A stretch of DNA of 63,115 nt, the filler included, from Olpidium bornovanus S191 (lineage: Eukaryota > Fungi > Olpidiomycota): assembly GCA_017911155.1 (NCBI GenBank). It is 23 parts of 23 records of this genome, joined end to end, with 100 filler letters (N's around TTAATTAATTAA, not from the genome) between each part and the next. Parts side by side here need not be neighbours in the genome. Positions count along the whole stretch, not along the records: positions 52,685 to 55,598 come from JAEFCI010003927.1; 22 more parts are not named here. One strand, given 5' to 3'. Positions 52,685 through 55,879 of the stretch are shown piece by piece. Below the pieces are notes generated by a model. That model saw nothing but the letters and a program-made list of their open reading frames with translations, ran no database searches and had not been told where the DNA came from. Within the stretch, counting starts at the first letter, position 1. Each line of letters begins with the position of its first letter. The position numbers were made by a program, and so were the translations under genes.

Positions 52685-54320
52685 CGTAGTTCTGCTCTGC
52701 CGGCGTATTCTGAGGAACAGGAACCCCCTGGAAAAATGTCCGTACGACGCGTGCGTTATCCCGACGCACACTTGCGCGTCCGAGACGAAAAGCGGCAGCT
52801 TCATGTGCCTTACCTCGTCGGCGAACGACAGATAGTTTGGGCCTGCCGCCTCCTCGTGGCCGGTCTTAACATCCCGCGTATGCAGGTCCATTAGCTTCTG
52901 TTCGGCCACCAGCATGTCCAACTTGTACTTCTGCATTTCTTCGTACCGCGCAACTGAGTCCGTCCGTCCGCAGTGGGGACATGAGTATCTTGCCACAACG
53001 TCACGAAATGTCAACGGACCCGCCTCCCTCCCCGTCTCCCAACCCCCCCTCACCGTTCTGCGACACCCGCTCGACGTCGGCATGCGCGGCCTTCGCGATG
53101 TTCTCAAGCGACACCTTCCGCCGCTCAGCGGCAGCGGCCGCGCGGGCTTCCAGCTCCTCTTTCCTCCTCTTCCTCCTCTCCTCGGCCAGGGAGTTCAGCT
53201 GGGCTCTGATCTCGGCGTAGCGGGGGAGATCGGCGGCCTGGTGTGCTTTGGCGGCGATCTCCTCGAGAGCCAGCCTGCGGCGCTGGTAGACCGCGGCGGA
53301 GCGTTCCTCGTCCTCGCGGAGCCGGCTGAGCACGCGCTTCTCGAACTCGGCGTCCAGCCTCTCGCGGATCTCGGCGTGCTTTTCCAGATCGGCCGACTTG
53401 TGGGCCTTGGCCGCGACGTTCACGAGCGACGCCTGCCGGCGCTCGTCGGCCGCTTTGAGCCGGGCCTCCCCCTCGCGCGCCCGCGCGGCGCTGTGTTCGG
53501 CGCTGCGCTCCTCCAGCTGCCCCCTGCTCCCCGCGTGCCTGGTCCCCGCCAGCGACTGGTGCGCCCTCGCCGTGACGTCTTCGATCGACGCGCGCCGCAT
53601 CTGGGCCGCGTCGTTCGTGCGGCTCGCCAGCCTCTCGGCGTTCTGCCTCGCTTTCTCGGCGTTGGCGGCGTCGATGGCCTCCTTGTTTTTGAGGACGCGG
53701 TCGGCGTGGTCAAAGGCTTCCGCGCGGCGGAGGCGATCCTCCAGCGCCGCCTTGTGGATCTGCTCGGCGTGCTCCTCCCGCAGGCGGTGCAGTTCGGCAG
53801 GGCGGTCAAAGGCCGTCTTTTCCTGCCGGGCGGACGCGGGCTCCCCGGCCGTCCGGCCGGCCGTCGCGTCGTCCGCGCCGGCGGACGCGTTCGCCGTGCT
53901 CGGGCTCGCCCGCCCGAGTTCTTCGGAGTGGTCCCTTTTGGCGTTCAGCAGCTCCTCCTCCCTCCGGGCGATCTCCTCCCTCAGCCTCTCGCGCTGCGCC
54001 TTCCTCTCCGCGTACTTGTCCAGGCCCGACACCTCCCTGGCCCTCTCAGCCTTCTCCTCAAGCTTCAGCTCGCGGTGAACCTTCGCCTCCGCAAACCGGG
54101 CGTTCAGCAGCTCCGTCTCCCTGAGGGCGATCTCGTCGGCCAGGGAGCGCAGCCTCCCCTTCGCCAGCTCGCGTTGCTCGCCCATCCGCGTCCTGGGCGC
54201 TTCGGCGGCGATGTTGTCCAGCGACGGCCGGCGCCTCCCGTCGCCGGCCGCGGCCGCCTCGCCAACCTGCTGTTTCTGGGCGTCGCACGCCGCCGGCTTC
54301 GCGTCCGCGACCTTCGCCAT
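52685..54320 (-). CDS. Helical repeat protein with 53-aa period, 3' partial
   Basis: ORF 53001..54320 repeats RR.SL..IAAKAH..ADL.(K/R)(H/Y)AEI. It probably splices (GTGAGG donor near 53052) to exon VARYEEMQKYKLDML. Confidence 0.75.
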
Positions 54321-54392
54321 CTGCTGGGGTGGTGGTGGGCGCGGGGGAAGCGGGGAGCGCGACTCTCGCGTCGTCTGGCCGGATTTTTCTCT

Positions 54393-54423
<31 letters not shown>

Positions 54424-55879
54424 GGTTTTTTTTTTTTCCCTCCTCCTGTTTAGTTACGGCCGGGCCCCGTTCGGCGGCGCTGAATTGCCCCCGCTCAGAA
54501 GCCCACAGCAGGGAAGACCAGCGCGGACGCAAAGACCCCGATCGCGGACCGAGGAAGATCAGCCGCCCCCGGGAACTACGGCCAAGACGTTGTGCCGTGG
54601 CAAGTGGAAGGGCGCGTTCCGCAAAGTCGATCGCAGGAAGAATCGGAGTCGACGGGCGCGCCCGTTTGCGGAGAAGCGTGGGCGTGGGCGTGGGCGGATT
54701 GTTCTTCCAAACGACGACAGCGACCGCCTTGGACGAGCACAACCCGGTATTTCCGCGTCCGCGGCGGTGCGCGCCGACTTGCTCCGCCAAGGTGCACGCG
54801 TTCCACCTGAGCTCCCAGGTCAAAAGGAAGCGGAAACCCCACTTCTCGCGCAGGCGGGCACTCGACAGGCAGCAAGAACACGCAGCTCTGTCCGGCGGCA
54901 CGAACAGCAGTCATTTCCGGCCTGCTCCGCGTCGCGACGGGCGCGCTGCTCCCGAGTCCACGGGGGCGCAGCCGCCTTCGACACCACCGCCGAGGCTGGT
55001 GCCGGCGCGCGGAGCGCCGGGTTCGCTCCGCGCGTCAAGCGTCCGGTACGCCGCCAACGCTTGCCGCAAGGCGGCTCAGTCGAGACCTGGCTTCTTCGCG
55101 AGCGCTGGTCGCTGGTATTTTGCATTCTTCCGGGCTCGCCGTGCATTAAGTGCCGCGCACCGTCCAATGACAGTGGACCAGTGGAACCTCGCCTGAGGGA
55201 AAACGAAAAACCGGCGGCGTCGCAGCGAGGACTGGCATCGAAACAAACCGGCAACGCTGGCTGCAACCGGTCGCGCTAAAGCCTGAAAATTGAAGTTTCC
55301 GGCGACGCGGTCTCCTCAGGACGAAACGTGCGGCGTTCGGTGGCCAAAAAACCCACGCGAGCCCTGTTCCAGCCAGAGAACGGGCGGCGCCAGGCGACCG
55401 CCCAAGGCCACTTGCTCGGGACCTCAGCGAAACGGGGGCCCGGCAGACCGGCGGACAAAATCTGGCCTCTGGATGCGCATGTGCAAACACCCGTTACGCA
55501 GAGCAGCGAAAGGGAAAAGACGGAGCGGGGCGTGGAACAAACCGGGCAGCTGGTGTAAAGTCATACAGGTGCCTCGGAGCAGTTGGAGAGTATCCCAANN
55601 NNNNNNNNNNNNNNNNNNNNNNNNNNNNNNNNNNNNNNNNNNTTAATTAATTAANNNNNNNNNNNNNNNNNNNNNNNNNNNNNNNNNNNNNNNNNNNNTC
55701 TCGGACGGGTTGGGAGGGAATAAGGAGGCCCGGGCGGGGTGATGGTGACGGGGCGGGGGGGCGGGGGCGGGGGCGGGGGGAGAAGGGGGGGGGGGGGGGG
55801 GGGGGGGGCGGTGTGGGAAGAAGGGAAGCCGTCCGTTGGTCCGCGCGCACGCGAGCTGAAAGGGACTGATCGCCAACAG

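Follow-up and report, generated by a model that had tools for sequence, protein, structure and literature searches.

What does a protein period of exactly 53 residues measure, and might it be the 8-nm repeat of the tubulin dimer? The question is raised by a minus-strand open reading frame (ORF) of 439 codons, located at positions 53001-54320 of the window, that is, the whole stretch of 63,115 nucleotides analysed here, which comes from the fungus Olpidium bornovanus S191 (assembly GCA_017911155.1) and consists of 23 parts joined end to end with filler letters; the ORF lies in the piece 52685-55598 (JAEFCI010003927.1). A first-pass annotation had described its product as a helical protein with an exact 53-residue repeat matching the spacing of tubulin dimers, and as possibly stathmin-like or axonemal. 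The protein is built of eight in-register 53-residue units. Concerning the meaning of the period, the best guess, with a probability of about 0.3, is that the protein binds microtubules in register with their lattice and is controlled by phosphorylation.

The 53-Residue Period

All the repeat heads listed in the first-pass annotation were located at the residues claimed. The four C-terminal ones (SIEDVTARAH, SLVNVAAKAH, ALEEIAAKAH and SLENIAKAAH) start at residues 245, 298, 351 and 404, each 53 residues from the next, and the earlier pair (SLDNIAAEA at 33 and KLEEKAERA at 86) shows the same distance, with GLDKYAE at 99. Repeat detection, which that annotation had proposed as a check, gave a mean BLOSUM62 self-similarity per residue of 0.61 at offset 53, 0.41 at offset 106 and 0.14 at offset 159; all the remaining offsets between 5 and 199 score -0.117 or less, and the top value of 300 shuffles is 0.118. 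The joined spliced protein (see below) served for reading and for periodicity statistics; the database and fold searches took the ORF, the frame of exons 2 and 3, and fragments separately.

The MAFFT alignment of the units has no internal gaps. The four C-terminal heads, used as queries on residues 1-230, gave their three top 10-residue matches at residues 33, 86 and 192, all in phase 0; therefore, the N-terminal and the C-terminal groups stand in one register across a degenerate unit. Seven motif heads (residues 33, 86, 192, 245, 298, 351 and 404) share this register without any indel. The unit spanning residues 139-191 is degenerate and largely disordered (the score of the predicted local distance difference test, pLDDT, stays below 50 at residues 139-168) and nevertheless measures exactly 53 residues. 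The units, all on the minus strand, are the following:

54066-54224, minus strand: unit 1, residues 33-85, head SLDNIAAEAP, with RRPS33L before it
53907-54065, minus strand: unit 2, residues 86-138, head KLEEKAERAR
53748-53906, minus strand: unit 3, residues 139-191, degenerate, register kept (from pLDDT and the phase test)
53589-53747, minus strand: unit 4, residues 192-244, head ALEDRLRRAE
53430-53588, minus strand: unit 5, residues 245-297, head SIEDVTARAH, with RRAS245I
53271-53429, minus strand: unit 6, residues 298-350, head SLVNVAAKAH, with RQAS298L
53112-53270, minus strand: unit 7, residues 351-403, head ALEEIAAKAH, with RRLA351L and the hinge residue Pro366
53054-53111, minus strand: head of unit 8, residues 404-422, SLENIAKAAH, with RKVS404L; the tail is in exon 2

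The identity between units at third codon positions is 0.30-0.60, the chance expectation being 0.43, and Tandem Repeats Finder (TRF) disclosed no 159-bp period. Since the third-codon identity is at chance and TRF is blank for 159 bp, the duplications that separated the units are old; the synonymous sites being saturated, both the motif and the unit length have therefore long been kept by selection, without indels. The repeat is genuine and exact, and selection acts on it.

Units 1-2 (residues 33-138; 53907-54224), aligned as a pair, are 31-32% identical to units 6-7 (residues 298-403; 53112-53429), and this is the pairing preferred by MAFFT. The comparison of the amino acid sequences suggests that a two-unit block of 106 residues may have been duplicated at an earlier time, on top of the 53-residue period. 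Multi-unit shifted profiles were dropped because MAFFT paired identical overlaps or slipped by one unit.

Anatomy and Predicted Fold of the Unit

Conservation is centred on unit positions 1-10, that is, on a head with the consensus [S/A]-L-E-[N/D/E]-[I/V]-A-A-[K/R]-A-H, frequently with R-[RKQ]-x before it. Outside the head there are further charged columns, for the most part conserved, positions 17, 22, 43 and 51 being basic, position 31 mainly acidic and position 38 mixed. The least conserved positions (12-15) lie in a Gly/Pro-rich hinge at about positions 11-16; eight of the 11 Gly and Pro residues outside the degenerate unit are found at positions 10-23 (P = 0.002). After the hinge, a charge-dense and hydrophobic-poor helix of about 37 residues is predicted, which continues into the next head. 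Sites of the form R-[RKQ]-x-S-hydrophobic, the consensus of basophilic kinases such as protein kinase A, are present at Ser33, Ser245, Ser298 and Ser404, with an Ala version (RRLAL) at 351, and all of them are in phase 0.

The full model obtained with AlphaFold2 (AF2), run without an alignment, contains helices at residues 34-96, 102-137, 170-258 and 266-422. The model of residues 245-422 consists of three helices of 51-63 residues; units 6 and 7 are each interrupted for 2-3 residues at positions 12-14, and the pLDDT dips in phase. The predicted template modelling (pTM) scores of the full model and of the fragment are 0.26 and 0.29, respectively. The helical protein of the first-pass annotation is thus retained in the sense that most of the chain is predicted to be helical; the unit, however, is not one unbroken helix: its head is joined by a hinge to a long helix.

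The protein contains 20% Ala, 14% Glu and 13.5% Arg and no Trp, and strong hydrophobics account for 18% of it. In most 28-residue windows, the best-register occupancy of a/d positions by LIVMFYW is 0.12-0.5, with a maximum of 0.62 near residue 328 and at 412-426. Opposite-charge i/i+4 pairs are enriched over residues 266-456 (z = 3.74) and 34-456 (z = 3.89), the value for residues 34-137 being only 0.07. This charge pairing, together with the low a/d hydrophobicity, would fit a stiff single alpha helix rather than a canonical coiled coil, in particular over the C-terminal two thirds of the protein. The C-terminal units 4-7 are mildly basic (isoelectric point 8.5-9.8). A homodimer prediction for residues 266-422 scored 0.00; it was run without controls and counts neither way.

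The run RRKRRKEE (residues 380-389; 53154-53183, minus strand), which occurs in unit 7 only, resembles a classical basic nuclear localisation signal. STMND1 carries a nuclear localisation signal within its stathmin-like domain (PMC11238091), and the likeness between the two may be a coincidence.

Gene Structure and Transcription

The ORF is the sole stop-free frame of the minus strand, and its GC content by codon position is 0.74/0.49/0.91. A contig of 1588 nt, from a run whose library type is guessed, not known, to be RNA, matches the minus strand and skips two segments, 52954-53053 (100 nt) and 52728-52813 (86 nt). Both are bounded by GT..AG on the gene strand, and the frame is kept across the two introns; thus, the gene is transcribed and spliced, and the orientation of the splice sites makes the minus strand the coding one. 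The spliced contig has a depth of 84.6 and reaches 58 nt past the edge of the piece. The gene is real, protein-coding, transcribed and spliced, and the contig supports the corrected model given here; the gene is absent from the protein collections searched.

The contig also changes the boundaries. Exon 1 ends after residue 422 (...VERVSQN), and the last 17 residues of the ORF (GEGGLGDGEGGGSVDIS) fall, with the stop codon, within intron 1; the protein runs on through exons 2 and 3, so that the visible product has at least 483 residues and its C-terminus lies beyond the piece. The interval 53001-54320 of the first-pass annotation is therefore accurate as an ORF and not as a coding sequence (CDS). 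The features of the gene are as follows:

54321-54381, minus strand: 5' untranslated region (UTR), minimum extent (the contig covers 54381-53054; upstream ATG absent)
53054-54320, minus strand: CDS exon 1, residues 1-422 plus 1 nt, with units 1-7 and the head of unit 8 (from the ORF, GC by codon position and the spliced contig)
52954-53053, minus strand: intron 1, 100 nt, GTGAGG..CAG (contig joint 52953/53054, CT..AC on the plus strand)
52814-52953, minus strand: CDS exon 2, residues 423-469 (VARYEEMQKYKLDML...SFADE), with the diverged tail of unit 8 (from the spliced contig; no Pfam family)
52728-52813, minus strand: intron 2, 86 nt, GTAAGG..CAG (contig joint, 'cut +1')
52685-52727, minus strand: CDS exon 3 (GVPVPQNTPAEQNY...), cut by the piece edge (from the spliced contig)
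54384-54437: poly(dT) tract of 54 nt, almost pure T on the plus strand, poly(dA) on the gene strand (from TRF and reading of the sequence)

The poly(dA:dT) tract, just upstream of the mapped 5' end, is presumed to be a promoter element or a nucleosome-free region. It separates the gene from a second transcribed region, represented by another contig of the same run (54512-55351; 840 nt, word depth 6.4, unspliced), in which no convincing ORF was found on either strand and Rfam gave only a sub-threshold match (c4-a1b1). This contig, which embeds a perfect (GCGTGG)x3.5 microsatellite (54676-54696), may represent either a non-coding transcript or the long UTR of an adjacent gene located past 55598. 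Three single-base differences between the contigs and the window (52865 C>T, 54246 G>C and 54888 C>T) are probably strain or allele variation. A 760-codon ORF on the plus strand (52914-55196), antisense to the gene and the intergenic region, was rejected as an artefact of the high GC and of the third-position GC of 0.91; its product would be rich in Leu, Arg, Gly and Pro.

Search for Relatives

The hmmscan search against Pfam (E<=10) assigned no family to the whole ORF, and all that Pfam yielded for the ORF, for the frame of exons 2 and 3 and for six fragments was sub-threshold noise (WWC1, FTA4, Caldesmon, IQ_SCN5A_C and a Zn-ribbon). No match was retrieved by phmmer from 1.84 billion cluster representatives (E<=0.001). 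Word-index searches were blank with the whole ORF and with residues 245-422 (E<=10), and so were the prokaryotic genome contigs, the exact-product lookup and the metagenomes of the Joint Genome Institute, the latter both with the protein and with a two-unit alignment. Neither a 53-residue microtubule repeat nor a stathmin in chytrids turned up in the literature searches.

The best lead in the ESM Atlas is an unnamed, mostly diatom cluster (0.88, and 0.91 for residues 192-422), and the only Pfam family named there is Stathmin (PF00836), below threshold, with 0.84 and 0.88; scores of this size are within the range sometimes reached by shuffled sequences. Foldseek returned for the full model a single row, a sperm doublet-microtubule chain, which is not significant (E = 2), and no rows for the 245-422 fragment; neither model matched a compact bundle. 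As far as these sequence comparisons go, the protein appears to be an orphan with no detectable relatives. Since the protein itself is absent from the collections, the blanks partly reflect a poor sampling of the lineage it comes from, and they do not prove that orthologues are absent.

A Possible Microtubule Ruler and Its Alternatives

The equivalence between 53 residues and about 8 nm, on which the first-pass annotation relied, is arithmetically sound (53 x 1.5 A = 79.5 A) and has precedents in MAP7 and MAP9, two solved cases that make a lattice reading reasonable. According to this reading, the protein would lie lengthwise on a microtubule protofilament, with each alpha/beta-tubulin dimer occupied by one unit. 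At 1.5 A each, some 50 helical residues, together with 2-3 residues of the hinge, would span about 80-85 A, to be compared with the dimer repeat of 82 A. The conserved head would be the repeated contact and the charged helix a stiff spacer, while the hinge might absorb small length mismatches and bring the helix back to the same face in every unit. If phosphorylated, the in-helix Ser33, Ser245, Ser298 and Ser404 would weaken the binding stepwise, leading to a graded release. In its fullest form, which can be advanced only tentatively, the proposal is that of the first multi-unit lengthwise helical microtubule ruler: at least eight helix-hinge units on one protofilament, one per dimer, about 65-70 nm long, with head contacts and a kinase site in most units for graded release, which would have evolved within one lineage and be unrelated to MAP7, MAP9, tau and stathmin.

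Several points weigh against a microtubule ruler. The phmmer search of the PDB, which covers stathmin/RB3, MAP7, tau and doublet-microtubule chains, gave no match at E<=10, and the unit profile retrieved from it only SPT16D (E = 0.08) and eL24 (E = 5.9), with no microtubule-binding protein. The structural neighbours found by VIA-align wide are tied generic long helices (Z 6.5-7.2), among which doublet-microtubule chains stand together with tropomyosin, lamin and the myosin VI single helix. No orthologue was found in any collection searched. In three raw RNA-seq runs of 2026, which belong to two studies and bear the same species label, none of the roughly 10 million reads sampled per run fell on any part of the piece, a result rated as no test; expression may be confined to a stage or condition, the strain may differ, or the label may have been applied loosely. 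Eight contig sets from two other studies contain 47-74% of the sampled words.

Other objections concern geometry. Fifty-three residues correspond to 14.7 turns (15 turns would require 54), so that the face of an unbroken helix would shift by about 100 degrees from one unit to the next; the ruler therefore needs a hinge, and the presence of a hinge in phase with the units removes this objection. Residues 266-422, however, form one continuous helix in the full-length AF2 model. Moreover, the conserved columns do not lie on one helical face (there is no single-face helical moment), and the absence of a conserved face suits a linear docking motif as well as a lattice contact.

A docking function is indeed one of the alternatives. 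In this case, seven or eight R-R-x-S-L-E-x-I-A-A-K-A-H motifs at fixed spacing would each recruit a small partner, with Ser phosphorylation as a gate and no microtubule involved, much as IQ motifs recruit calmodulin and Sfi1 repeats recruit centrin. The conserved part of the unit is a contiguous 10-residue block, the remainder resembles the charged spacer of a single alpha helix, and the kinase-type sites are exactly in phase, all of which would be expected of such a helix. On the other hand, no known docking motif fits: IQ gave one sub-threshold match in one unit only, Sfi1- and MAP9-type motifs are ruled out by the absence of Trp, and the AKAP RII-binding pattern, which we take to be [AVLISE]xx[AVLIF][AVLI]xx[AVLI][AVLIF]xx[AVLISE], was rejected as an explanation of the head, since it occurs just once, at residue 57 and out of phase, with 1.85 occurrences expected in shuffles, and is broken by the His at head position 10. 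In addition, separate partners need no exact, indel-free spacing. The docking helix is judged a possible explanation, on the doubtful side. Much the same can be said of a purely structural spacer or linker, whether single alpha helix or loose coiled coil, in which the period would be the trace of old tandem duplications, with no periodic partner, and indels would be absent because long helices tolerate them poorly. A charge pattern typical of single alpha helices (z up to 3.9), the 18% of strong hydrophobics, the orphan status and the generic long helices among the structural neighbours (myosin VI included) speak for it. Yet the motif of the heads and the Ser and Arg residues that recur in phase have been kept despite the saturation of the synonymous sites, which implies that the units are selected for more than helicity, and the disordered unit 139-191 is still exactly 53 residues long, whereas a disordered linker would be expected to drift in length. 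We hold the spacer, too, to be rather unlikely, while deserving serious consideration.

Far less probable is a canonical two-stranded coiled coil forming filaments or fibres of the rootlet, striated-fibre or nuclear-matrix type, with 53 residues read as seven heptads plus a stutter (7 x 7 + 4). The hydrophobicity power does peak at 6.66 and 3.54 residues, and conserved or Ala positions recur about every seven residues (33, 40, 47, 54/55, 58 and 62); however, the two peaks correspond to 53/8 and 53/15 and, being forced harmonics of the 53-residue period, are not independent evidence, and strong hydrophobics occupy only 0.25-0.5 of the a/d positions in most windows, so that the protein did not classify as a canonical coiled coil. 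The stathmin-like character put forward in the first-pass annotation has found no backing in the sequence: PF00836 is not matched at E<=10 by the whole ORF or by any of the six fragments (hmmscan), and no stathmin/RB3 chain of the PDB was retrieved by phmmer or by the unit profile at the same threshold. A stathmin-type sequesterer would hold a row of soluble, curved tubulin dimers, each on one unit, and prevent their assembly until it is phosphorylated. Stathmin is the only Pfam family among the (sub-threshold) language-model look-alikes, and the in-helix basophilic Ser sites presumably recall the stathmin sequence around Ser63; the architecture is nevertheless different, with eight units in more than 480 residues where stathmin has two sites and a domain of only about 100 residues, and no N-terminal capping or lipidation motif is evident. 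Proteins with stathmin-like domains are known in Opisthokonta, fungi included, and none was found in Chlamydomonas (PMC11238091). A fungal stathmin would thus not be new in itself, and, stathmins not being core proteins of the axoneme, the connection drawn at first between a stathmin-like and an axonemal protein is weakened. This sequesterer is the most improbable of the explanations considered, and the 8-nm ruler remains the best single hypothesis among them.

Comparison with Known Systems

The spectrin repeat (106 residues, three-helix bundle) was tried and rejected: Pfam gave no match, the pTM is 0.26/0.29, Foldseek found no bundle, and the offset of 106 is the second harmonic of 53. A closer resemblance in composition is offered by the ER/K single alpha-helix domains of myosin VI and myosin X, which share with the protein the enrichment in i/i+4 opposite charges and the low hydrophobicity, the myosin VI helix being also one of the tied structural neighbours; we know of no long-range exact period or conserved recurring motif in ER/K domains. 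Tropomyosin and nebulin, whose periods are of about 39 and 35 residues, are similar by analogy only, in that the spacing of their sequence repeats follows that of the subunits in a filament, as it would in the Olpidium protein. The structural neighbours are headed by thin-filament tropomyosin, which shares this rank with many others; the filament, however, is a different one, there is no homology, and the Olpidium protein lacks a coiled-coil core.

Among microtubule-binding helices, the domain of MAP7 (ensconsin) is an extended 53-residue alpha helix, parallel to the axis and approximately one tubulin dimer long (PMC8985661). It is similar to the Olpidium unit in being a charged helix of the very same length, and differs from the whole protein in that its resolved footprint is a single segment instead of eight tandem units; no likeness to MAP7 was detected in Pfam (any MAP7 model) or, by sequence and by unit profile, in the PDB. 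In MAP9, spacers of fixed length separate five short pseudo-repeats along one long helix, so that each of them meets an equivalent tubulin site; its study takes the tubulin dimer repeat as 82 A (PMC12667982). The design of motif plus spacer is shared as a concept only: MAP9 runs around the microtubule across protofilaments, while the Olpidium protein would run along one of them, and the motif Phi-x-x-W-x-x-x-K on spacers of 35-36 residues contrasts with a period of 53 and was not found in the protein. The stathmin/STMND1 domain is likewise a long charged helix, and stathmin binds tubulin dimers in a row; it has two tubulin sites, and the Olpidium protein, with its eight units, is much larger and devoid of the lipidation motif.

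If the period were the mere trace of duplications, the protein would be one more lineage-restricted charged helical protein, of little wider interest. If the ruler is correct, it would provide a simple system for studying how lattice spacing is read, including compacted versus expanded lattices, and could be used as it stands in structural studies, as an 8-nm ruler or scaffold. Of the known helical binders, MAP7 covers one dimer, MAP9 bridges protofilaments sideways and stathmin caps two soluble dimers; unlike all three, the Olpidium protein would have a period equal to the dimer repeat over eight units, and would represent a microtubule counterpart of nebulin or tropomyosin.

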